Of a stretch of DNA of 64,000 bases, positions 28,788-43,956 are shown piece after piece. The position numbers were made by a program, and so were the translations under genes. Source of the DNA: Zygnema circumcarinatum SAG 698-1b (Eukaryota; Plantae; Zygnematophyceae); contig CM074807.1 of assembly GCA_037447605.1 (NCBI GenBank), positions 2,676,327-2,740,326 of the forward strand, read 5' to 3'. The notes beneath the pieces are model-generated. The model saw only the letters and a program-made list of their open reading frames with translations, searched no databases and was not told the origin of the DNA. How positions within the stretch are numbered: position 1 is the first letter of the stretch; the number at the start of each line of letters is the position of its first letter.

Positions 28788-29666
28788 GGCGCCTCTTCGT
28801 TCTTAGCGACCAAACAAACGCCTCTAGGTACTCTCCGCCTCCAGAACGAAGCCGCCTCCGCTCAGCCTCAGCTTCCCCTGCTGCCTCCCCCCTTCCCGCT
28901 GACAGGCGCGCCCTAGCAGGTGCTACCAAAGGTGCAGCGCGCGGCCCTGCGGGGGGTGTCTGAGTGCGCGTGCAGGGCGGCCTCCTCCCTCCCTCCCTCC
29001 CTGCTTGCTTGCAGGCGAGTGCCGGAGGGGGGCCTGCCAGCGGGCGGGCGGGCGCGGGGGGCCCTTTTGCTTTCGGGGCCCAAATTTGAAAAACGAACAC
29101 GCGCTCTCGCCGCGAGCGCTCGTTTGCGCGCGAACGCACTTCAGCGCAACGAATTGAAATATTCAATCGAATTGACATAACAACATCGGCAGCACCACCA
29201 GCAGCAGCTCTTGCAACACGCCGTGCCGCCCGGCGGCGGGCGACCATGGGATGGGATGGGATGGGATGATGTGGCGGAGCATGGGGAATGGGGCCATGGG
29301 GCCATGGCATGGCATGCTCAGGTGTGCGCATGTGTCGAACGTGGCCGGCCGCGAAAGCGAGTGCGAGGGAGCGAGAGAGTGAGCATGCGAAGTCGATGTT
29401 CTCGCGCCGGGCCGGCGAGGGAGGGAGGGTCCCGGCGGGACGGACGGGCCCCTCTTTTGAGCCCTTCGGGAACAAACAGTCCTACTAGTGCCGCACCGCG
29501 CGGTGGCGCCCGACATGCGGACGGACTCGCGCGATAGATAGCAGGGAGCCACGGGATGTCGATTCAACGATGGCGTGTGGCTGGGTGCGCCAGCCGATGG
29601 TTGCAACCATTGGCAATGAGACGATGACTGAACCCATTTGCACCTAACTATTGGCAATGGTTGGCT

Positions 29667-29852
29667 GGCCTGGTCCCGTCCCCCAATGGTTGAATTCATT
29701 GCCAATGATGTTTGCCGGATCCGCCAACCAACGGATGGTTGCAAACCCTGCCAATGGTTGGCCTGGTCCCGTCCCCCAATGGTTGAATTCATTGCCAATG
29801 ATGTTTGCCGGGTCCACCAACCAATGGATGGTTGCAACCACTGCCAATGGTT
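29667..29852. repeat. Two-copy 93-bp tandem repeat, rich in CCAAT and short palindromes, in the RAD21/fusion-gene divergent promoter
   Basis: The unit GGCCTGGTCCCGTCCCCCAATGGTTGAATTCATTGCCAATGATGTTTGCCGG... starts at 29667 and again at 29760, near-identical. A related degenerate half-unit lies at about 29596-29666. Confidence 0.9.
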
Positions 29853-30135
29853 GGCTATCCGTAGACCGTCCGCGCGACGAAAGGTCTCTCGAAACTTCGC
29901 GCCACGCGACCGTCCGACGTGGCAGTCCGGATCGCGGAAAGGTGACTGCGTGCGGCCAGCGGGCGCCACGTGGCGCGGTAGGCCCCGATGGGCGGGCGAG
30001 CTGACGCCAGCTGGCGTCAGAGCGCTCCTCCACGGTGAGGTCAGCAGGGAGAGGGAGGAGGGAGGGAGAAGCTGTCTTCTCGGGAGGCAGGAGGGACGGA
30101 GGGAGCTGGAAGCAGAGCTCGCGTTGCTCTCCGCC

Positions 30136-33100
30136 ATGGCCACCGTGCGCCGCAAAGCTTCCGACGCCTTCGTGAAGGCGCTGGAGAATGAGAACATCGA
30201 GTGCGTCCTGCGCCTGTGGCAGGGGCAGGGGGGCAGGACCTTAATGCAGAAGCAGGGAAAGAAAAGTTTGGGTTTGAAAGGCGTTGACTTTAACGTAGGC
30301 CCGTCCTTGCTGCTGCCACTTCTGATACCTTGTTTTTGCACATGTTCGCATCAGGTACATATTTGGCATTCCTGGAGAGGAGAATCTTGACATCTTGAAC
30401 TCCTTGAGGGAGTCCAGCATCAAGCTGGTGGTGACGCGCCATGAGCAGGCGGCGGGTTTCATGGCGGCGACAGTTGGCCGCATGACTGGAAAGTGCGGCG
30501 TGTGCCTCTCAACATTGGGTCCGGGAGCCACAAACTTTGCAACTGCAGCAGCATATGGGCAGCTGGCCGGCTTTCCTATGGTGAGCGCTTGATCACAGTG
30601 CCTGCATCCAAATGCCGGCATTGGCGCTCCGGGACAGATATCGAAGCTCTTTCGAATCTTTGTTTTCGAACGTTCTGAACTTGATTGAGTTAAATAAACT
30701 AACATTGTTACGAATGCGGGGCATTGGGACGCTTCCAGTTGATGATCACCGGCCAGAAGCCGATTCGGAAGAGCAAGCAAGGCTCCTTCCAGGTGGGCTT
30801 CTCACGCTTTCAGAAAGGTGAATTGACCGGAAGCACTTTTCTATGAATGCAGGAGTTTAATCACGATAAAAATTGCCTTTTGTGTGCAGATTGTGGATAT
30901 TGTCGAAAACATGCGTCCTATAACCAAGGTGCCTTCTCCTGCCTCCTTTACTTTACTATTATATAAAGATAAAAAAAAAAATAGCCATTCTACTGTGAAG
31001 AATATTTATGATGGTTGTCCTTGAGATTCAGCGAATCCGATAGACCTCAATAAAGCTAAACTGAATTTAAGCTGCACTGATTTCTGCAGTACACGAGGCA
31101 AATTGCGGATGGCGACCTTGTCCCTTCTTGTGTCCGGGAGGCCATCCGAGTGGCAGAGGAAGAGAAGCCCGGGGCTGTGCATCTAGAGCTTCCTGAAGAT
31201 ATTGCAGAAACGCTTACAGATGTTCCGGTGTTTCCCGTTCACGAAGTTCGCCGCCCCATTGCTGAGGCGAAGGCCATAGCCAAGGCGGTCGCAATGATAC
31301 AAGCAGCGTCACACCCGCTGCTGCTCATCGGAGCCGCTGCAAACCGAAAGCGCACACGCAAATCGTAAGGCGTGCCACTCCCTTTTCTTTCCTCTTCTTG
31401 ACTTGCCGTTCTTTCTGTCTCTGTTTGTCCTATTGGCAGCTAGTGCAAGGTTTCGCCTTTCTATTTCTTTCTCTAACTATCGCTTTATCTTTACGTTCCT
31501 GTCTTACAGCCCTTCTCCCCTCCTTTTCTGTGTGGGCTGCAGGCTCCGAGAGTTTGTAGATGAGTTAGGCATCCCCTTTGCCACAACGCAGATGGGCAAG
31601 GGCGTCATTACAGGTGGGGAGAGCCCCTCTTCCTTTAGTCACCTCGATTAATCACTTCTGCAGTAGAATCTCACTCTCTATATGGAGCTTGCCCTGCAGA
31701 GGCCCACCCTCTATACCTCGGCTGCTGTGCTCTCTCTGCTAAGGACTATCCTCACAAGTGCATCGACCACGCGGACCTTATCGTGAATATTGGGCATGAC
31801 ATTGTGGAGAAGCCCCCCTTCTTTATGGTGTGAGTTTTTTCAAGCTCTAATCTCAGTCTGTGAATATGGAGAGAGGGGTGCTAGAAGAGCGTCTTAGTGG
31901 GTGGTGTGGGAGAGGCTGCTCAGGCATGGGAAACCGCCTGTCGTCATTCACATCAACTTTTACTCCGCCAAAGTGGACAATGTCTACTTCCCACAGGTGG
32001 ATTTCCCTCTGCCACCTTGCAATTGGAGGAGGACCTGCAAGTCGAGCTTGAATTTGTTGCGTAGAGCTAAGTGTGAGTGGCGGGAAAATCCGAATAAGAG
32101 AGTGACTCGGAACGCCGCCTGTGTTGCAGCTCGAGGTGGTTGGAGATATTGCTAATGCCGTATGGCAATTGAAGGAATCTTTGAAAAGGCAGTCTCAGTG
32201 GGACTTCAGCTTCTTCATGAAGGTGGCACATTCAGCGTCTCGTCTTTTGCTTAATTTTCTTTTTTTATAAATTCATTCTCTTTCTTGGCAGAGACAGCTG
32301 GTCTCTGCAATGAAGGACTCATATTATAGGCGGAGCTGTACAGGTGAAGGGGGAGATGGACGTGCATTTGGCAAAGGGAATGGATTCCACGCAGTTCCCC
32401 CTGTGCCCACAGCGTATAATCGCAGGGCTCAGGTAATCAATCTGCTTCACAGAATATGCGGTGCAGAAAGTTAGCCCAAAAGCACCTTGGGGAATGCTTT
32501 CTCCCGTAGTGAAAAAATGCCTCAATTCTGAAATGGGGGCAAAATGTGGGAGTGGGATGCAGAAAAGCACTGCCAGATGACGGAGTGGCCTGCCTGGATA
32601 ATGGTGAGCCTCTCTCCTATACTTTTGTGTGCGCTTTACATGCATGAGGATAGTTGTAAGGAGCAAGCAAAGATGAGAGCAGCATGCTACGACATGTTAT
32701 CAAATCTGAAGTGGGCTATCCTGGGAATTTGCATCTCAGGAATGTACAAAATCTACTTTGCTCGAGCATTCCGGGTAAGGTGTTGTAAACCTTCGTGCTA
32801 AGCACAGCTCTGAATGCCTACTAATTAGGATTTAAAATCAATCTCCCTAAATGTCATACAGATGATGCTCGTTGTTCTTGTGACATTGTCTTGAATTCTC
32901 AAAAGGAACGCATTCTTCTAGTTTTTCCCGGAAATAAAGGCTTGATGCATGCATGCATGCATGCATGCATGCATCCAATGCAGGCATATGAGCCCAACAC
33001 TCTGCTGCTCGACAACGCTCTCGCCACTATGGGGGCCGGTCTACCCTCAGCCATGGCTGTTTCCCTTCTGTATCCCGAAAAGAAGGTGGTCGCAGTGTGC

Positions 33101-34240
33101 GGGGACGGAGGCTTCATGATGAACTCGCAGGTGTGTGGGAGAGGACCATTTACCAAAGGGTTTTGGAGTTCTGTTTTAAGGGTATTTTGCTGGGGCTACT
33201 TTGATTTCATGGTTTCGATGTTTCGTTGAGGGGGTTTGTGAGCGGTCTGCAGGAAATGGAAACAGCGGTGCGACTCGGTCTAAATCTCACCGTCATTTTG
33301 CTAAACGACAACGGATATGGCATGATAAAATGGAAGCAGGGCACTGCCGGCTTTCCCAAGTGAGCTGGAATGCTGTTTATGTTGAAAGAGAGAACAGCGA
33401 AACTCATGATTATACGGGTGAAAAACAAGGGTGTTGTACATAAGAGGTGCAAATTATAAAGTCACTCTCTGATGCCAGTTACTGTGAGTTTTTGACAATT
33501 CTGGTGGGCCCGTTGCAGCTATGGACTGGACCTAGGCAACCCTGATTTCGTCAAGTATGCGGAAAGGTGAGTGAAAACGTTTCTATTTGACTTTGAAGAG
33601 TGATAATGCCGAAGCAGAAATGGAGAGCAAGTAGAGAAATACAGCTCAGGAAGGGTACTAAGAATAGAAATGCAGCAAGAATATCGAATCAGTTGCAAGC
33701 TCCTTTAAGAAGTTGAAGTGAATGATGGCAATTTCAGGGCTGCCCTGAAATTGAAGGGAAAAAAGGAAGGAAGAAGAAAGAAGGGAAACAAAGGAGAAGA
33801 AGGAAGGGAAGGGAGAAGGGAAGGGAAGAAGGGAGAAGGGAAGACAAGAAGAGACAAGACCTGAAGGGAAGAAGGGAAGACAAGTCCTGAAGGGAGACAA
33901 CTCTATCATATGTGATGATGGTCAAGGGCACAGCTATGGCGCTAAAGGCTACCGTGTTGAGAGTCCGGATCACTTCGAGGAGCTTTTGGAGGAGTGCCTG
34001 CACAAGGGCCCCCCCGGAGTCAAACTCATCGAGGTCCGACCAATGCGTACCATTATGCTTCCAAGCACTTGGTCTCGTTTTCGCTACTTCGTTTTAACAT
34101 ACAGAGCGAAGAAGGCTCATCATGGGTTGGATGGATATATGCCGCGTGTGTAGGTGCCTGTAGATTACACGTGGGCCAATAAGATGCTCGACACCGAATT
34201 GCCAGGCTTGATGGCCAATCATCATCTTCAAAGCACGACT
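30136..34240 (+). CDS. N-terminal half: ThDP-dependent acetolactate-synthase-like enzyme of the PRK08322 type (17 exons)
   Basis: Spliced translation: [33 protein letters not shown]...[10 protein letters not shown] (catalytic Glu)...[10 protein letters not shown]...[14 protein letters not shown]...HLELPEDIA...TTQMGKG...[11 protein letters not shown]...[15 protein letters not shown]...[11 protein letters not shown]...[10 protein letters not shown] (ThDP/Mg motif)...[19 protein letters not shown]...VPVDY. Confidence 0.93.
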
Positions 34241-37200
34241 GTAAGTTTTGACTTGCAAGAAAGATAAGTCAAAAAAAAATTGAGGTGTGTTAAGAGGATG
34301 ACTTGACAGATGGTTTCAGAAATCGCAGCGTTGCTAACTGTGGAATGTATTGATCCTTCTCACAAGAATCTGAAAAATCAAAAGCCGACTAGCCGTGCTT
34401 TCAAATACTCTCTCCTCTGATCACATCGAATGCATCCTTTGGCAGAATGTTTCAAGTAAGAATTATAATAAGTTCTGACATTTGAGGGCCTCGACATGGT
34501 GCAGGTGATCTCTCCCGCTCTCGCAGATGCCACATCGGTACCCAAAACATGCGATACGGATTCTCAAACCGTTCCTTTTGAGCAGAAATCTCCACCAACT
34601 AGTGATGTCGCACAACCTGCGGCAGTTCCTCCTTCCCCTTCTCTCCCTCCACCCAAAGAGAAAGAACCTGAAAACAGTTTCGAGGCAGCTCCAAAGCCTT
34701 TGCCACCATCATCTGTGAAGGTTTATCCCTTTTACTTGGCAAACAAGCCTGTTTTTGCCAATCAGGACTTGGACATAATTAATAAGTACAACGGAGAGGT
34801 GGGAGCCAAGTGTGCGCTTGCGCATGCTCGTGACATCGACACTGCCATTGCGGGAGCTGTGAGGGCGACCAAGGCCATGGCCGCCATGGGAAGCTTCGAG
34901 AAGAAGGCAGTGCTGGAGAAGGTGGTGGCGGAGGTGAAAGATCGCTTTGAGGAGTTTGCTCAGTCTCTCTGCCTGGAGGCAGGGAAGCCCATCAGGTGAG
35001 CTGCTCGAAGGAGTGAAGTGAGAGTGAGAGTGAGAGAGCCGACGGGAGGGAAGGAGGGAGGGAGGGACGGGCAGTGCGTTTGAAAAACTTCACTGAAGAA
35101 TGGGAAGGGGGAATTCTCTTGTATGAGTACAGAGATGCACGAGGGGAGGTGCAGCGGCTTATCGACACCTTCCAAGTCGCAGCAGAGGAGAGCGTTCGCA
35201 TGTACGTTTGGGATATGTAGAGGGAAAACAAGCACCATGGCTGCTCGGTGAGCATGGATGGCTACATGCAGGGCTGAGTTGGAGAGGGAGGCATGGCAGG
35301 TATGGGGAGTATGCGCCGGCCGACATCTCAGAGCGCGCAAAGGGTTATCAGACTCTGGTGAGCTATATAGAAGAGATAGTCTCAGTCTCAGTCTCCTCCC
35401 ACTCCCCTTTTGTTTTATTTCCGGAACACTGAGTTATCGATGGATCCGTAAGAAAAGTGGCGGCTTGCAGCAATGGCATTCCCGTGTAATGATGAGGCGA
35501 ACTTAGCGCATGCAGGTCCGGCGATTCCCGATTGGACCCATCAGCATGGTCAGCCCTTTCAATTTCCCTCTAAATCTGGTGAGTTCAGCTACTCACCTTC
35601 CTAGATTCCACTTTAGAACCCTCTTAGACCCTTCTTCTGGTCAACCGCGCTGCGGAGCATTCCAGATCTCCTCCTATTGCGATTAGTAAATGGGCCTTAA
35701 TGCGTGCTGTGATTGGGGATCAGAAACTGCATATACTCTTCTATTCTCGTTGAAGTGAGAAACGGGTGCTTAGCCACTAGACAGTGACCAGCATCCTTAT
35801 CGTCCTTTCACCTACTTCCTTTTCCTACTTCTTACTTGTTCTTCTTATTCGTCGTACAGGCCGCTCATAAAATCGCTCCCGCCATTGCTGTGGGCTGCCC
35901 CTTCGTCATGAAACCTGCGAGGTGGGCCCAACTTTGTAAACGATGTGCAAATTATTCTCAGAGTAATATGCGTAAACGAATCTTCTGATCAAGTTAGAGC
36001 AGCTATTGCGTGCAAAATTTTTAGTTCCTATCCAAGCCCACGAGTAACACCTGCTGTAATGCACTCCATTATCTCATGTGAACCTTTTTTGACTTCAACT
36101 TTGAACCGGTCTGCGAGCGCAGTCGAACTCCTATTGGAGCTCTGCTCCTTGGTGACATTTTGTCGCGATGTGACCTTCCGGAGGGTGCCTTCTCCATTCT
36201 GCCGTGTGCGAGAGATGGGGCGGACCTTTTCACAACAGATGAACGCTTTAAGCTGCTCTCTTTCACGGGCTCCCCAAGTGTACGTGCATGAATGACCAAG
36301 AACGATACACCATACAGTAGCAAATTAAAAGCTTCAAAAGCTGCAAGACCTGCCCAAGAGCTTGCCTATGCATAACCTCACGGTTCGCTCGTCTTGCAGG
36401 TCGGGTGGGCTATGAAGGCGAAGGCAGGAAAAAAAAAGGTGGTGTTGGAGCTGGGGGGCAATGCAGCCTGCATAGTGGAGGTGGGCAGTCTTTACCTCTT
36501 CCAAACTGTACCTTCTTACTCGGAAATGAGGTAACTAACTAACTAACTAATTGTGGTTTCAACAATGTTTCCGGTGCATTGCAGGACCTCGTGCCGGACT
36601 TGGAAACAGTCGTGTCGCGAATAATATTCGGGGCCTTCTATCAAAGTGGGCAGTCTTGCATTAGCGTACAGCGCGTCTATATTCGGCAGGTACATCTCTT
36701 TTATCTGACCGCAGGCTTGCTCCTTCTACTGGAGTTTCCGACGAAACTTTGGAGTATTGCTTGACATGCACTTCTTACTGAAAGCTACCTTTACTGTTAC
36801 TTAAGTTAGACGGTCGAGTTTGCAGGAGCTTTACAACACAGTGAAGACAAATTTGGTTGAAAAAGCTTCAGCTTTGAAAAAGGTACGATTCTTTCAGCTG
36901 GGCTCCAAAGCATGCTTTCAGCGCTTATCATCGTTCGAGTCAGCTCTCCATTCAAGTCATATATTGTCCTCCGCAAGTGCTCAGGATTCAGAAATCTTCC
37001 CGTAAGCCCACTCAATCCCTTTCATTATGTTGTATATGTTCGAGAGGTATCTGATACTGTATGGTTTTCTGCAGGGCGATCCCTTCGATGAGAGCACCTT
37101 CATAGGGCCGATCATTGCCGAGTCTGAAGCAAAGCGCATCGAATCGTGGGTCTCGCGAGCGGTCGCAAATGGGGCAAAGTAAGTAAAGCGAATTTTGCGC

Positions 37201-37993
37201 TTGCGCACGCTTATGAAGTGGTGAGCTCTTAAAACTGTGTTTGGTGATTGATGCAGAGCTCTCTGTGGAGGAAAGCGGGAGGGAGTTTTCTATGATGCAA
37301 CGGTCCTTGAAGACGTTGAACCTTCCATGGAAGTGAGCTTCCTTGCTTGAGACCACATTCTGTTTGTCCTGTTTGTGTTTGGTGAACTTTTGTATGACCA
37401 ATCTCTTCTGATGGTTTCCCGCCCTCCTCTCATAGTAAATCCTTAGCTGTTCAAACCATGGAAGGTATGCTCTGAGCTCCTTTCTCCGACTGCCCTTTGG
37501 GACAGGTGCATGCAGAGGAGGTTTTTGGGCCGGTCGTGGTTTTGTATCCATACTCCGACTTCAAGGCTGCAGTGGAGGAGGTGAACCAGTCCAAGTTTGG
37601 GCTCCAAGCCGGCGTGTTCACTACTGACTTCAACAAGGCATTCTACGCGTTTGAGCAGCTGGATGTGGGAGGGGTCTGCATCAACGACATCCCCAGCATG
37701 CGAATCGACTCTCAGGTGGGCCCTCAACTGCAGCCTTCTCCTGGGCGTGTGGGTGATGTGAACCTTTTCTCCTCACACAGTACAGTACAGTGCTCTCCTG
37801 ATCATGCTTTCGGACTATAGGGGGCGTGCAGTAGGGCTGACGTGTCTGGGTGTGGGAGAGGCGGGTGCTGTTGCAGCCGTACGGCGGAGTGAAGGATTCT
37901 GGGCTTGGTAGGGAGGGCATTCGGTACGCCATGGAGGACATGACAGAGCTGCGAGTGATGCTTATGCGTAATGCGGGGAAGCTTGTTTCCTAG
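30136..37993 (+). CDS. Predicted fusion protein: bacterial-type ThDP-dependent decarboxylase (ALS-like/OgdA family) + Pro-rich linker + ALDH21-type (succinic-semialdehyde) dehydrogenase; about 30 exons, roughly 1,100 aa
   Basis: Both halves are intact (see the next two features). The junction intron 34241-34504 (ACT|GTAAGT ... CTGAC branch point ... GTGCAG|GTG) joins ...ANHHLQSTT to [11 protein letters not shown]... in phase 0 with no stop. Confidence 0.78.
34505..37993 (+). CDS. ALDH21: C-terminal half: linker + aldehyde dehydrogenase family 21 (13 exons)
   Basis: [10 protein letters not shown]...[29 protein letters not shown]...SPFNFPLNL...KPASRTP...FTGSP...VLELGGN (catalytic Glu)...[12 protein letters not shown] (catalytic Cys)...EEVFGP...[30 protein letters not shown] closely follows moss ALDH21A1 as I recall it. 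Confidence 0.92.
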
Positions 37994-38694
37994 ACACGCG
38001 CTGAACCCTTGTCAGTGGCCAGGAGTTTGCTTTCTCCTCTCCTCTTTTCTTGTGCAGGTGGGTTGGTTGGGCGCACTTATAAGGGCGTATGAGATGTGTG
38101 TATGTCGTGTATTTATATTGACCTTATGGGAGGAGAATCTTGTGACCATGCTGTCAATGACCTCATACAGGAAGAGTTGGAACCTACAGAGTTCATCAGA
38201 GCAGTTATTCCATTTTTTTTTATTTTACTGCAATTGTTTGACCACATTGCAGCTCCTCTAGCAATTAAACTATGCGCAGACATTACTGCGCTCGGCCATA
38301 AAAAAAACACCGTGGTTTGGAGAGAATGCCAAACCTGAGCATCATGCATGTCCATGTACCATCATGTTTGAACATGAAGGATGGTGCATTAAATCTCATG
38401 TCTTACATAGCTCTCTCCTTGTTCAAAAGCCATGACCATGATATTCAACGCCATCCTTGACACAGGAGGAAAACACAAAAAGGACAGCGATGTCCTAACT
38501 GACTTGCCTGCAGCGTGCTCCTTCACAGTGATCCTGTTATCTGCTGTCTAGTGTTTGCATAGACTTAAATTGGCTGCCGAAGGTGATTGAATTCCTGCAG
38601 GTTGACCTCCATTTCACAGAGCAGGCCGTAATCAGTGAAGTCAGACCATTGCGCCTCCCAGCGGTTGAGGGGAAAGCTTCTTCAGTAAAGGCTT

Positions 38695-41117
38695 TTACCG
38701 CAGGTCCACCATGTACCAGGGGGACTCAAGCTCCTTCACTGGTGTAATCCACTGCTTCAGCTTGGGCAGCTGCCGGGCGAACTTGACGACATGCCACCCT
38801 TTGGTGGTGGAATCTTCAACCATCGCTCCCGCCTGGTCGTAGGTGCATATAGAAATCTCGGCATGTAGTCGAACGGCGAGGACAAAGAACATATCATCGT
38901 GGTATTGCTCCAACTGAGGAACCAGGCTCTGCAGCCCAAAGCCTCCGCGGCCATCGTCCTGCCATGAAGGCAGCAACAACACTCCCAAGACTATCACTAA
39001 TCAATCTAATGTGCAACTGCCAGCATGTCCTTCGATTTGTTTGCAAATAAATAAAACCTGAAAGTTTACCTGACCATGTATGAATGTTAATAAACAAACT
39101 TTACATGTGACTCTCACAAGAACCTTCACTTCAGATCGGATACAGGAAAGAACAATGAAACATATTCCAGCCGGCCAGCTCACCGCAAAGGAAAAGTCAA
39201 AGTTGACGAGCCGGGCAGAGTCCACCTTCTTCACTGTGTATTCCACTCGCAGGTTTTGTTCTTTCCACTTTGGAATGTGTTTGTACTTTCCTATTGTCTG
39301 CTTATAAGCGATCTGTTCTCCATCCCAAAACCATTCATAGCATGTTTGATACACCCTGAACCGGTTTATCACAAACATTGATTTCCAGGAAAGTGGCATA
39401 GGGTTAAACATATGGTCTGCTAGTGAAAGAAACTGCATCCAGACTATTTCACATCCTTAACAGTACTTTTAAAAATGGAGGGAGGATTTCGAGTCTGCAG
39501 AATCACGAGGCAGTAAATAGGATAACAAGAAAGGTGTACCAGCCACATGGAAGTTTCTAAACTAAATTCTCCTTAAAGGCAGTTCTGATTGCAAACGAGA
39601 GAAACGACGACTCACATCAAATGCCGTCAACATCGGCGGAGAAACCATGTTTCTCATTGTCTCAAAATCACCCTTGCCAAATAACTCTTGAACTGCCAGA
39701 AAACAAGATTGCTATGTCAGGATCCAGAAAATAATCAGTTACAATACTCGAACTGCACTATAAGTGCAGGCGGGCAGGAAAATGCTTCAGGCCGTGCTGA
39801 GCAAGCAAACAAAAAAACCGAAGGGTCCTTGAAGCATTCAAAGAAAAAAAGAGTAAACCAGCTTGACTCCTCAAGCATGTAGCAAAGCTGCAACTTCAGC
39901 TTATCTTCGAAAAGTGTGAACGAGAACAGAGCAGGCACAGTCCGATATTGAACACATTGCCTCCTAAGTCATTTAGTCTTGTTAATGCCGTTTTGTCAAA
40001 ATAACAACTGACCGGTTATGAAGGCATGCTCTGCACCCTCCAAAAAGTCCTCCACGTCGAACTGTGACTCCAACATGAATGAGTGGAACTTTAAGTAAAC
40101 TGCCATCTGCCACTCCAACACAGTAACGTAGTGAATACCTGAACCCAGTCAGTAAATGAAAAACATCGAATACGCTGATTTCAGCATCAACGCTCAAAGA
40201 GTCACTCCATGGCATACGGTCTGATAAAACGTATGTGATGTAAGTAACAGTATCAAGCCGGTCATTTACAAGATGTGTGCTGCACTAACACTTCGTTATT
40301 GCGCAAGTATCTTAGAATTTTCAACAGCCAAAGTCGACAGTGGCAGGCCAGTAGGATTTTTGAATTAGAAAAAGGCAACCCGTATGACGTGCTTGAACAG
40401 GCTGCAGCTGGCTTACAAGTAAATCAACATTTTCCAATTGCAAGTTCTCTAGGAGTAAACTATAATTAGCAAAGATCACAATTGCAAAAACCTATTAAGT
40501 CCAAGCTGGTTTTCATAACTTACCTTAATTGAGGTCCAAAAGTCCATCAGAGAGTGACTCGGCTTTTGTTTTGATATATCGAAAACAACTTTGAAGGGTG
40601 TAGATGAACTTTCTGTGTTCATCTTGTCGGATGTGCTTTCTACCTGGGGAGTAACATCCTCTATGTGCTGTCTAGTTTCTTGGTTGCTGCTTCCTTGGGT
40701 TTTCACCGTCTCTTGATCGACATCCTTCCCTGACGTCCCTAATTCATCCGCCTTTGACGATTCTGATGAAGAAATTGGTCCCTCCTTCATGAGTGGGGCT
40801 CTTGAACTTATTTGTAACTTTTCCTTTTCTTCTCTTCTTTTTTTGTAGCTGTGGCTGCCCCGCCTAAAGGCTGTTGGAATGGGAGTACCTGCAAGATGTG
40901 AGCTTGTGCCATCCACATAATAAGAGACACCTGTTCTTGTATCTAGATTTGCAGAAGTGTTTAGTTCGGAAGCAGATTCAGAGGACACGAGACATCCGAG
41001 TCGCAACGTGTGCCAAGCAGGTGTCAATCCGGACTGGCCCAGGGATGAGGCGATGCCTGATGAAGCCAAAATAGCTTGCAGAGCCGCCTTGCAGCCCTTA
41101 CGCTTGAGTGCAGCCAT
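38695..41117 (-). CDS. Tim44-like domain protein (MAIP1/Mba1-like), probably mitochondrial
   Basis: Exon 1 (41117-40524) has an Arg/Lys/Ala-rich N-terminus. Later exons give FDVEDFLEGAEHAFIT|VQELFGKGDFETMRNMVSPPMLTAFD and LAVRLHAEISICTYDQAGAMVED...WHVVKFARQL...SPWYMVDLR*, which is the Tim44-fold pattern. One internal exon boundary is uncertain. Confidence 0.7.
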
Positions 41118-41416: not shown

Positions 41417-43956
41417 ATGACATCGAGATGGCAGTCTGTAATACCTTTGCGGGAGTCTTTGGGGCTTACTTGCGCATGTGGCATGGAGTCTGTTCGGTTA
41501 CAGGAGAGGAGGACTGGAAGCAGTCAGAGGATGCAAGCTTCAGAATTCTGCAAGAAGGGAAAAGCCTATGGTGCTGAAGAAGGAACTCGTTGCTCCCGCG
41601 CATCCAGTAAAGTCTGTTTACAACAAGGTCATTATTGCAACATGGAACGGCAGAGTGGGATTTGTTCGAAATTAGGAAGCTTACATCATGTGAAAAATTC
41701 AAGAGATATTGCAGCTGCTGGTTGGAGGATCTCTTTTGTCGGAGGCACCTTTCTTGAAAAAGCACCAGGCTCTTTATGCCGAGCGAGTTCAAGTGAAGGC
41801 AGTCACGATGCTGGAGTGGCTTCGGATGATGTACGAAGCTTTACATCGCATTTGCATTTCAATAACAAAGCTTGAAAGTATGCGATAACAGAACAAATGG
41901 CCCTGCTTTTCGTTTTTTGTTTCTTTGATTGGTGGCGGAGTTCTATGACAAGGCTGTTATTTTTTTCCTATAAAGCTTGAGAGAGCAGGATATTTTGAAT
42001 CCGTTGAATTCACTCCTCCTCACTTTGGCTTGGTGTACTTCATTGGAGCATGTTGGGCCGTCCACCTTGATAATTCTCCGCTTAAATGCAAAGTGCATTG
42101 TTTATTAAACGAACGACAGTTTTGACGCATGTTCTTCCCTTGCCGCGTGTTTGTACATTTTGCCTGCTCAAACAGATTATCAAACAACTGACCGAAGGAA
42201 GCAATTTGCTCAACAGAAAATGTCAAGGTGTTCAGTAGAGATTCCCAATTATGTTGATGAAAGTCAAGGTACAAGCATCAGAGGAATGGGAACTGTTCTT
42301 CATGAACAGTCTGCATTTGTTTCGCTGAGTTATTTGAAACTGTGAAATCTCTTGGCTCATTACACCCTGGACCCCCCTTATTGCACCCTGGACTGCTGCT
42401 GCTGTGTGCAGCCCCAAAACTCAGCGTTGAAAATAGAGCAGCTTCAAGTGGAGTTGGACCATGCAGTACGATCAGAGCAGTATGAGTTAGCTGCTCGACT
42501 TCGAGATCGCTTGCGGTACCTCATCTTTCACTCTTGCGAACCCTTCAGTTAGTGGAACCATAGGGTTTTGTGAGTTGTACAGAATAAAGCATAGAAGGTA
42601 TCGTAGACAAAGCTCTCTTTTGATTAGTCATTTCTTTGATTGACAGTCGAGCCCAAATGTTTCTGAATTGTTTTGAAGAGAGGCAACCGAATCGACTTCA
42701 AGGGGAAGGAGGGAACTGATCAGGGTCAATGCCATATGAATGTCAGTTGAGAAGTCAGTCTGCCTTTGGAACTATCTGTTTGAGCAGCTTACTGTTTTCT
42801 ACAGCTAGAAGAAAAGCATGTTCTTGTGCCATAATCGAATGGCCTGTCGTTGGGGGGCAGAATATTGCAGGAAGATGATGAAGCAGCCGTCCTAGCTGCT
42901 AATGCACTCTTCTACCGCGCATTCGCGAAAGCGGATCTGAGGCTCATGCGTCGAGTTTGGGTAAATGCCGAGCATGTGCAGTGCCTTCACCCAGGAAACA
43001 ACTGCATTTCTGGATATGACCTGGTAAGAGTTCTTCTTCCATGTAACTCTCTCATTAATCTATAGGGCACGTTTTCTCTTCTCTGTCAATATCTATACTT
43101 TCAGATTTCCCTACTACCTTCTTTGTCTTTCATGGCGGCAAGCCCTGCCTTTCATACATTTTGTTATCTTTCAGGTGTACCTGCCATGTCTGCTATCAGG
43201 CTTCCAAGTACCACACTTTGCTTTTTGCTTTTTGCTTTGCTTTTGAGTAAAGGAACGTGACTATCGCAATTAAAGTCCAGTGAACCACGTGGCGACCAAG
43301 AGCATGAATTTAGCCTGCTGAACTCCAAACGCGCAAAATTAGAATATGTTGCTTGCTGAAGAGCTTGACGGCTTGCACTTACCTTTGAAGATTTCTGCTG
43401 AAGGGATACAGAGGTGGCGTGTGCATGTGTTGCAGGTGATGGCCAGCTGGGAAGCAGTTCTGAGCAGTGCTCGGGAGTACCGCATCGACCTTGAGGATGT
43501 GCGCGTGCACACCAATGGGACCATGGCGGTTGTTACCTGCGTGGAGGTCATCCGAGCAGCTGGAGGCGCAGGCAGGTTGGTCCCATACCTCCGTCCTGAC
43601 ATCATGGGTGTGATGCGCTATCATGCCGGAAGCTCTATGCTGTAGTTGCGGGGATACATGGAGAGAGTTAGTTTTTTGCAAAGACCCTTTGTAAGCCATT
43701 GTTCGTCATCGCTAGCTTCATACACATTGGCAGGCGCTGTCTAAGGTCGTTAATACGAAACGAGCTCGTCGCTGCTTTGCAAGTGTTCTCTTTTTACGTT
43801 TTGACGTTTGTGTACTCTACGTTTTCATGTTGGCTCAAGCATTGGATGTCTGCGATGGGCAGGATAGCTGCAACAAATATTTACGAGAAGCAAGGGAATG
43901 AGTGGCGCATATGTCTGCATCACGGGTCCCAGGTGCCGACGTCACTGTTTGCATGA
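41417..43956 (+). CDS. UVR (UvrB/C) motif + SnoaL/NTF2-like domain protein (SKIP8-like family), likely plastid-targeted
   Basis: Exons give IEQLQVELDHAVRSEQYELAARLRDRL (UVR motif), then ANALFYRAFAKADLRLMRRVW...CLHPG...ISGYDL|VMASWEAVL...IDLEDVRVH...VTCVE|ATNIYEKQGNEWRICLHHGS*. The long Ser/Arg-rich N-terminus fits a transit peptide. Confidence 0.85.

Follow-up and report, generated by a model that had tools for sequence, protein, structure and literature searches.

A ThDP-dependent enzyme fused to ALDH21 in Zygnema circumcarinatum: a candidate one-chain route from 2-oxoglutarate to succinate

Results

Structure of the fused gene

This study concerns a single gene in a 64,000-nucleotide stretch of the Zygnema circumcarinatum SAG 698-1b genome (GCA_037447605.1, contig CM074807.1, positions 2,676,327 to 2,740,326 of the forward strand; the whole stretch is called the window, and positions are counted within it), which joins a thiamine diphosphate (ThDP)-dependent enzyme to an aldehyde dehydrogenase (ALDH) of the ALDH21 type. 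The gene model was built by three-frame translation and splice-site anchoring and covers 30136-37993 on the plus strand, on which all gene features given below lie. It consists of 30 exons bounded by AG acceptors and GT donors, with all introns GT..AG, and forms a single open frame of 1109 codons with a stop at 37991-37993. The ThDP half (30136..34240, residues 1-560) is a stop-free spliced frame of 17 exons, of which exons 1-10 lie at 30136-30200, 30355-30580, 30739-30792, 30890-30928, 31090-31364, 31543-31613, 31700-31829, 31924-31996, 32130-32222 and 32344-32432, and exons 11-17 at 32563-32603, 32740-32774, 32984-33130, 33253-33359, 33519-33566, 33934-34033 and 34154-34240. The two halves are separated by intron 17 (34241..34504), a phase 0 intron of 264 nt that runs GTAAGT..AG. 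Exon 18 (491 nt) opens in phase 0 at 34505 after its AG and codes first for a linker (34505..34714; about 70 codons) with a high content of Pro, Ser, Ala, Thr and Glu, and then for the ALDH N-terminus. The ALDH21-type half (34715..37993) comprises the rest of exon 18 and exons 19-30, with exons 18-24 at 34505-34995, 35133-35201, 35300-35357, 35516-35578, 35860-35921, 36123-36279 and 36400-36480, and exons 25-30 at 36585-36689, 36826-36882, 37075-37178, 37257-37332, 37506-37715 and 37877-37993. An earlier sequence-only reading, made by a model from the letters of the window, had described a complete ThDP enzyme of 17 exons without a stop before 34241, a GTAAGT donor at that position joined in phase 0 to 34505, a Pro/Ser-rich linker of about 70 residues and a complete ALDH21 behind it, and the spliced model bears out each of these points, the last with 12 further GT-AG exons after exon 18 that reach the stop.

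Retention of intron 17 would add 8 codons before a stop at 34265-34267 and yield a 568-aa ThDP enzyme. The same intron holds an in-frame ATG at 34496, 9 nt before the exon 18 acceptor, that is removed from the mature mRNA. Transcription from a start within intron 17 could yield a free ALDH extended at its N-terminus by the linker; the contigs from this intron were of low depth only.

Database, family and structure searches were run with single exons or, as a proxy, with the Mesotaenium orthologue P0159, which is 78% identical to the window gene in the ThDP half and 81% in the ALDH half, while local BLAST, MAFFT alignments and trees used the spliced window model directly. Pfam placed TPP_enzyme_N on exon 2 (2e-24), TPP_enzyme_C on exons 13 and 14, and Aldedh on exons 18, 23, 29 and 30.

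A fused transcript is the main product of the locus

RNA contigs from four runs belonging to four studies were aligned on 33900-38050. Of the words sampled from 33900-35200, seven runs of one organism contained 52-69%, approximately the share that is exonic. In each of the four aligned runs, a single contig of 5.2-5.96 kb skipped 34241-34504 as a GT..AG intron and joined all 14 junctions aligned, so that the junction 34240|34505, on which the predicted fusion depends, was spanned by the main contig in 4/4 runs. The loose 5' end of this contig consisted of the last 30 bases of exon 15, and the contig reached 1508-1548 nt upstream of exon 16, whereas exons 1-15 add up to 1493 nt, leaving 15-55 nt for a leader; from this length and the exon 15 end I infer that exons 1-15 are included in the fused mRNA. 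Separate contigs carrying intron 17 had only 12%, 0.5%, 4% and 0% of the depth of the main contig in the four runs, which makes the spliced fused mRNA the main product of the locus.

The fused-mRNA contigs ran on for ~2.5 kb past 38050, to ~40560. This extension may reflect a very long 3' untranslated region, or else a convergent transcript that the assembly merged into the contigs.

The ThDP half belongs to the family of cyanobacterial 2-oxoglutarate decarboxylases

Among the NCBIfam models, NF006187 (PRK08322, cutoff 509 bits) matched P0159 at 825 bits, and the scores of P0159 and of the moss and Marinobacter proteins ranged from 825 to 881. None of these proteins reached the cutoff of an AlsS or AHAS model, P0159 scoring 446 against a cutoff of 510 for PRK08617, 395 against 551 for TIGR02418, and 346 against 538 for TIGR00118. 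The nearest solved structure was PDB 13bb (1e-145), deposited as 'acetolactate synthase', while catabolic AlsS matched at ~1e-98.

The bypass attributed to Zhang and Bryant (2011) reportedly consists of the cyanobacterial decarboxylase OgdA/KGD (SynPCC7002_A2770) and the dehydrogenase SsaD (A2771). For comparison with such enzymes, peptide segments of the cyanobacterial enzyme MaKGD were read off its mutagenesis primers (PMC10418658 supplement), and one of them was used as a degenerate DNA pattern on metagenomes, which recovered 78 KGD-type cyanobacterial proteins. All 78 keep MaKGD Glu50, Val382, Ala384, His385, Lys386, Ala408, Met410, Asp435, Asp462, Tyr465, Leu467 and Lys471, and 64 of them also keep Gln254. 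An ALDH gene stood directly upstream on the same strand in 59/99 KGD-type loci, and the one such neighbour that was searched matched the Synechococcus succinic semialdehyde dehydrogenase (SSADH) structures (3vz1/4it9) at 2e-176. The matching MaKGD residues together with the SsaD neighbour validate this set, and the recovered loci are bona fide ssaD-ogdA pairs.

The residues expected of a ThDP enzyme with N, M and C domains, namely Glu52, Gly437-Asp438-Gly and Asp465, are present in the window half. Glu52 (codon 30443..30445) is the cofactor-activating Glu and corresponds to MaKGD Glu50, whose replacement by Ala inactivates the enzyme (PMC10418658). The GDG of the ThDP-Mg2+ motif, with Asp438 equivalent to MaKGD Asp435, lies at 33101..33109, and a segment of 10 residues at 33307..33336 holds Asp465, Tyr468, Met470 and Lys474, the counterparts of MaKGD Asp462, Tyr465, Leu467 and Lys471. 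A further lysine, Lys389 (codon 32748..32750), corresponds to MaKGD Lys386. In MaKGD, Lys386 and Lys471 are modelled to form hydrogen bonds or salt bridges with the distal carboxylate of 2-oxoglutarate, by docking into a predicted model rather than from mutagenesis or a crystal structure (PMC10418658). Both lysine positions were invariant in 164/164 proteins of the window clade and 78/78 KGD-type proteins, while AlsS has Ala and Gln there. PDB 13bb, a recent entry that is ~50% identical by eye, carries Met and Lys at the two positions.

The KGD-type proteins also scored best on NF006187 (869 bits), and they share with the window half the catalytic Glu, the GDG...ND motif and the two lysines, as do the named cyanobacterial KGDs (SynPCC7002_A2770, sll1981, MAE_06010). 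The identity between the window ThDP half and the KGD-type proteins was 41-43%, and in the ThDP tree the latter formed a separate clade with 100% support and long branches towards the window clade. The proposal of an OgdA-like enzyme thus stood as regards the curated family, PRK08322, and both lysines, but the window half is not an OgdA orthologue, and a grouping with sll1981, A2770 and MAE_06010 did not appear in the tree.

The second half is an ALDH21

The best solved match of the ALDH half was moss ALDH21 (PDB 5mz5), at 2e-196 for P0159 and 1e-26 for exon 29 of the window, for which the next structure followed at 6e-18; the nearest solved relatives after moss ALDH21 are three ALDH structures without annotation (5J6B, 5KF0 and 5JRY). 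Eukaryotic ALDH21 proteins and the ALDH partners from bacterial operons described below fell together into an ALDH21-type clade with 99% support. Identity as a Sad-type SSADH (SsaD; 3VZ1, 4IT9) was considered and rejected, as the Synechococcus SSADH was not among the PDB matches at E<=1e-60 for the P0159 ALDH half and the two types are only 30-35% identical. The gene is consequently not a fused ogdA-ssaD pair: the relationship of its ALDH half to SsaD is not of comparable closeness, and the cyanobacterial gene order is reversed.

Residues were compared with Physcomitrium patens ALDH21 (PpALDH21) after correcting for the offset of 18 between the deposited 5mz5 chain and the native numbering, which was checked at Arg121, Tyr296 and Arg457. 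The catalytic set is present, comprising Cys912 (Cys302), Glu877 (Glu267) and the oxyanion Asn782, so that with Glu52 and the GDG of the ThDP half the catalytic residues are intact in both enzymes, as the sequence-only reading had maintained. The motif YQSGQSC (36639..36659) contains Cys912 and also Tyr906, the equivalent of Tyr296. Arg121, Tyr296 and Arg457 bind the carboxylate of succinic semialdehyde (SSA) (bioRxiv 10.64898/2026.01.13.699213). Both arginines had been predicted to be retained, and they are: Arg457 is the Arg of SMRIDSQ as proposed (Arg1067, codon 37701..37703), but Arg121 corresponds to the Arg of GEVQR (Arg732, codon 35155..35157) and not to that of EESVR. The Arg121/Tyr296/Arg457 triad was kept in 46-47 of the 47 ALDH21-type proteins and in 21/21 bacterial operon partners. 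Arg838 is the equivalent of Arg228, which was conserved in 42/47 ALDH21-type proteins; the loop of Arg228 is said, in the work of Kopecna from 2017, to close over the 2'-phosphate of NADP+. Overall, the window domain resembles P. patens ALDH21A1 (5MZ5), a cytosolic NADP+-dependent SSADH, more than any other structure or sequence, with Cys302, Glu267, Arg121, Arg228, Tyr296 and Arg457 all kept, and it differs in being the C-terminal half of a 1109-aa chain rather than a free protein of ~500 aa.

The fusion is widespread in eukaryotes

A phmmer search with exon 18 returned P0029, a protein of 1019 aa matched at residues 494-628, and fragments spanning the ThDP C-terminus, the linker and the ALDH N-terminus. 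With P0029 as the query, dozens of proteins of 1015-1390 aa with TPP_enzyme_N/M/C and Aldedh domains were found. Fused proteins occur in Riccia (two species), Calypogeia, Ceratopteris, Adiantum (partial), Spirogloea and Mesotaenium, and further ones in Ostreobium, Bryopsis, Coccomyxa (two), Elliptochloris, Rhodosorus, Hondaea and MMETSP transcriptomes, while the Marchantia models are partial. The fusion is therefore not peculiar to this genome but is found in streptophytes, chlorophytes, a red alga and stramenopiles, with distant fusions reaching green algae, red algae and a labyrinthulid, under automatic public names such as 'hypothetical protein' or 'NADP-dependent glyceraldehyde-3-phosphate dehydrogenase'. 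A ThDP half and an ALDH21-type C-terminal half were present together in 26 database proteins. Residues 6-1107 of the spliced model aligned at 69-75% identity to the Mesotaenium, Spirogloea, Riccia, Calypogeia and Ceratopteris fusions, and this end-to-end alignment validates the model. In the ThDP tree every eukaryotic sequence fell into one clade (SH-like approximate likelihood ratio test, SH-aLRT, 98), within which a streptophyte subclade (100) placed the window next to Mesotaenium, Spirogloea and ferns.

The linkers of the other eukaryotic fusions are 43-120 aa long, of low complexity and not conserved. Most fused proteins have no N-terminal extension, and for this reason the fusion protein is probably cytosolic, as judged from the sequences. 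No description of a ThDP-ALDH21 fusion was found in the literature searched (full text, including reviews on ALDHs in plants and on the superfamily as a whole), in agreement with the earlier statement that none was known to be characterised in streptophytes.

Mosses carry the two halves as separate genes. Physcomitrium and Sphagnum have ThDP proteins that stand alone (580-720 aa) and share 70-77% identity with the ThDP half of the window gene. The characterised moss ALDH21 is thus the free counterpart of the C-terminal half of the window gene, with its ThDP partner elsewhere in the moss genome. A remnant ALDH 3' of the moss ThDP gene was considered and rejected, as no ALDH-like sequence lies within 10 kb downstream of the Physcomitrium ThDP gene. 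Five isoforms of 597-626 aa with different C-terminal tails are annotated for this P. patens gene (CM009341.2), and ~8.5 kb without a called gene lies behind it.

With the moss ThDP protein as the query, the hit list began with orthologues from mosses and liverworts (>=72% identity) and continued with proteins exclusively from bacteria (63-67%); seed plants contributed no orthologue of the ThDP half that outranked these. ALDH21 is reported to be absent from flowering plants (PMC7823795), and the two halves are accordingly present together and absent together. In a moss aldh21A1 knockout, succinate was down by ~20%, from which the authors of that study infer that the cytosolic SSADH is hard to compensate for; this fits a source of SSA beyond the γ-aminobutyric acid (GABA) route. 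The suggestion that ALDH21 has a GABA-independent source of SSA gains support from the fact that mosses, whose ALDH21 is free, keep the ThDP partner as a separate gene.

A bacterial two-gene module and a second, independent fusion

The bacterial scan covered the best 80 genome loci with a ThDP gene, which came from Pseudomonadota, Planctomycetota, Verrucomicrobiota, Bacteroidota, Calditrichota and others, and whose ThDP genes were 57-66% identical to the window half; no cyanobacteria were among these best 80 loci. An ALDH gene came next on the same strand in 57 of the 73 loci with enough downstream sequence, at a median gap of ~50 bp. The paired ALDHs were of two kinds, 30 being of the ALDH21 type (55-66% identity to the window's ALDH half) and 27 of a distant type (30-42%). 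No third conserved gene was found near the module, the most frequent other family occurring in 5/80 loci, and the module is therefore self-contained, as would be expected of one that starts from and ends in central metabolites. Positions 121 and 457 are occupied by Arg or Lys in the distant ALDH type, which also has Tyr296 in 17/20, and by Lys in the cyanobacterial SsaD type. Basic residues thus stand at the carboxylate-binding sites of ALDH21 in all three ALDH lineages that are paired with a PRK08322 enzyme.

The module, found for example in Burkholderia, Alteromonas, Paraglaciecola and Planctomycetota, is like the window gene in both halves (55-66% identity), in its ThDP-then-ALDH order and in the residues kept, but it consists of two genes without a linker, and about half of the modules carry the distant ALDH. 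Judged by sequence comparison, the eukaryotic gene looks like a fused copy of this widespread, non-cyanobacterial two-gene module, from which it would descend. Origin by plastid transfer of a cyanobacterial ogdA-ssaD pair was considered and rejected on account of the identity of 41-43%, against 57-66% to other bacteria, the different ALDH family, the reversed order and the trees. The cyanobacterial pair shares with the window gene its physical coupling and its two-step logic, in which a ThDP decarboxylase is followed by an NADP-type ALDH; it differs in that the genes are separate with the ALDH first, that the partner ALDH is of another family (30-35% identical to the window ALDH), and that the host is without 2-oxoglutarate dehydrogenase.

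Six of the ThDP-then-ALDH modules came from genomes of nitrifiers, Nitrospinae, methylotrophs, methanotrophs and sulfur-oxidising symbionts. Groups of this kind often have no 2-oxoglutarate dehydrogenase activity. In M. alcaliphilum, NADP-SSADH activity was high and 2-oxoglutarate dehydrogenase was undetected (PMC5802761).

A second type of fusion was represented by 11 intronless proteins (within P0182-P0196) of 1015-1048 aa, which combine the same ThDP clade with the distant ALDH type. They share the domain order of the window gene but have another type of ALDH, no introns and short linkers of 0-21 aa, with the ThDP half 60-63% and the ALDH half 33-37% identical to those of the window gene, and they represent a separate, independent fusion event. 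Three of their loci lay on compact contigs.

Discussion

The gene encodes a two-enzyme protein of 1109 aa which, by analogy with the characterised relatives of its halves, would combine a ThDP/Mg2+-dependent, non-oxidative 2-oxoacid decarboxylase (PRK08322) with an NADP+-dependent ALDH21 through a flexible linker. In the proposed scheme the ThDP half would convert 2-oxoglutarate to SSA and CO2, and the ALDH half would oxidise SSA to succinate with formation of NADPH, giving a cytosolic route from 2-oxoglutarate to succinate that would require neither GABA nor coenzyme A (CoA). Because MaKGD and PpALDH21 are reported as homotetramers, the protein probably forms a four-chain particle in which the source and the sink of the aldehyde adjoin at 1:1 stoichiometry. 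In this respect it would resemble AdhE and PutA, in which a single chain likewise carries out two successive reactions by way of a reactive aldehyde (PMC12041015); their first domains are unrelated, and the channelling shown for them is conjecture for the window fusion. The coupling of the two activities is conserved, as seen in the operon, in two separate fusions and in the shared presence and absence of the halves. I regard a fused two-step design as very likely. That its substrates are specifically 2-oxoglutarate and SSA is a claim held with moderate confidence, by analogy with the relatives, and the complete reading of the gene as a fused bienzyme leading from 2-oxoglutarate through SSA to succinate is, on the same footing, the best overall explanation and a reasonably probable one. 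The sequence-only reading had called this a bypass of the tricarboxylic acid (TCA) cycle. The two-step chemistry is well motivated, but as the protein has no N-terminal extension and the organism presumably has a normal mitochondrial 2-oxoglutarate dehydrogenase, a cytosolic shunt is the better description than a bypass within the mitochondrial cycle in the cyanobacterial sense.

Several points weigh against this explanation. The ThDP half is only 41-43% identical to characterised KGDs and stands in a separate clade, and the roles given to the two lysines derive from docking into a predicted model (PMC10418658). Five pocket positions of MaKGD differ in the window clade (Gln254 to Ala/Asp/Ser, Val382 to Asn, Ala384 to Met/Val, His385 to Tyr and Leu467 to Met), so that of the modelled 2-oxoglutarate contacts the equivalents of Lys386, Lys471 and Ala408 are kept and those of Gln254, Val382 and Leu467 are changed, with all contact roles coming from docking only. 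For the ALDH half, the Km of PpALDH21 for SSA is rather high at 181 uM, and SSA might not be its only or true substrate; the NCBIfam models that match this half best, all below cutoff, include lactaldehyde, sulfoacetaldehyde and phosphonoacetaldehyde dehydrogenases. The fusion is known here from the gene and from RNA contigs, and cleavage in the linker is possible. Assembled contigs can hide rare isoforms, and the alignment covered 33900-38050, with the 5' 3.8 kb of the gene lying outside it.

The same fused design could act on another anionic 2-oxoacid, with candidates in 2-oxoadipate (giving glutarate semialdehyde and glutarate), oxaloacetate (giving malonate semialdehyde), and 3-sulfopyruvate or 3-phosphonopyruvate (giving sulfo- or phosphonoacetaldehyde and the acid). 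The altered pocket positions and the high Km for SSA speak for such a substrate, the paired Arg/Lys would bind any distal anion, and the ALDH half scored 339 bits with SafD and 320 with phosphonoacetaldehyde dehydrogenase as compared to 312 with SSADH, all below cutoff. However, the sole characterised ALDH21 prefers SSA, and Arg121, Arg457 and Tyr296 are reported binders of its carboxylate; the sole characterised PRK08322 members are strict 2-oxoglutarate decarboxylases that do not use pyruvate (PMC10418658), and a central metabolite accords better than a special substrate with a bacterial module that has no transporter, regulator or upstream enzyme conserved beside it, which makes a different physiological substrate rather unlikely. 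The same lack of pyruvate use in the characterised members tells against a ThDP half that is an acetolactate synthase or other carboligase, joined for the sake of co-regulation to an ALDH that acts on unrelated aldehydes. Such an enzyme is what the name of NF006187 ('acetolactate synthase large subunit') and the deposition of the nearest solved structures as acetolactate synthases would suggest, but it would release no aldehyde, yet an ALDH adjoins or is fused to it in most lineages (at least 2 fusion events, three ALDH types), and P0159 lies under all AlsS and AHAS cutoffs. I consider this very improbable.

It is also quite improbable that the fused mRNA is real but gives mainly two separate proteins, through linker cleavage, retention of intron 17 or a start at ATG 34496. 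The long, low-complexity and unconserved linker would allow it, as would the intron 17 contigs at up to 12% of depth in one run, the end of read-through after 8 codons and the position of the ATG 9 nt before the acceptor, and mosses function with separate proteins. Nevertheless, the spliced form was dominant in 4/4 runs, the ATG is spliced out of the mature mRNA, and a fusion retained from streptophytes and chlorophytes to a red alga and stramenopiles speaks for selection acting on the joined chain. A misjoining of neighbouring genes by the model or by read-through assembly is scarcely credible. Logan contigs can merge overlapping transcripts, and the same contigs continue ~2.5 kb beyond the stop; two adjacent genes are ruled out, however, by the precise phase 0 GT..AG splice in four studies, by a would-be 'intergenic' space of only ~230 nt, and by the same architecture in many other genomes and transcriptome open reading frames (ORFs).

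ALDH21 has so far been treated as a free-standing, stress-induced cytosolic GABA-shunt enzyme of 'lower' plants, with its cytosolic source of SSA and its high Km unexplained. In most lineages that carry it, ALDH21 is instead fused to a ThDP enzyme of the cyanobacterial 2-oxoglutarate decarboxylase family, and in bacteria the two form an operon. If the fused bienzyme reading is true, this offers a testable answer for the 'orphan' plant ALDH21, namely that the ThDP partner makes its aldehyde. Early-diverging plants and many algae would then have a CoA-independent, NADPH-yielding extramitochondrial shortcut from 2-oxoglutarate to succinate with relevance to carbon/nitrogen balance and desiccation stress, the bacterial module that now goes under the name 'acetolactate synthase' would represent a TCA-cycle variant of wide occurrence, and the fusion would constitute a natural, compact two-step catalyst for succinate production. 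The most far-reaching version, to which I give an even chance, is that an ancient and widespread eukaryotic bienzyme for cytosolic, GABA-independent conversion of 2-oxoglutarate to succinate with NADPH, split in mosses and lost in seed plants, arose from a bacterial module that is itself an unrecognised TCA variant of the OgdA/SsaD kind, occurring well outside cyanobacteria and including nitrifiers, methylotrophs and sulfur-oxidising symbionts. Already known are 2-oxoglutarate decarboxylase plus SSADH as a type of system, characterised relatives of each half, and the architecture as it stands in public protein sets; new are the single-chain form, ALDH21 as the partner, the spread in eukaryotes, the origin in an unstudied module of bacteria, and the connection of ALDH21 with a ThDP enzyme.

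Other features around the gene

About 280 bp upstream of the start codon, at 29662-29855, lies a 93-bp unit repeated 2.1 times (94% match) and rich in CCAATGG/TGGTTG, which may be a promoter-proximal repeat. Intron 12 contains an (ATGC)n microsatellite (32945-32987), and intron 15 is unusually long (367 nt) and holds a GA-rich low-complexity tract at 33753-33879. Downstream of the gene, a minus-strand ORF of 213 aa at 40476-41117 gave no Pfam match. On the plus strand at 42352-43645, ORF pieces with weak SnoaL-like matches (E ~2e-4 to 6e-4), together with an upstream piece that resembles a UVR-type helix, are probably a separate downstream gene with several exons.

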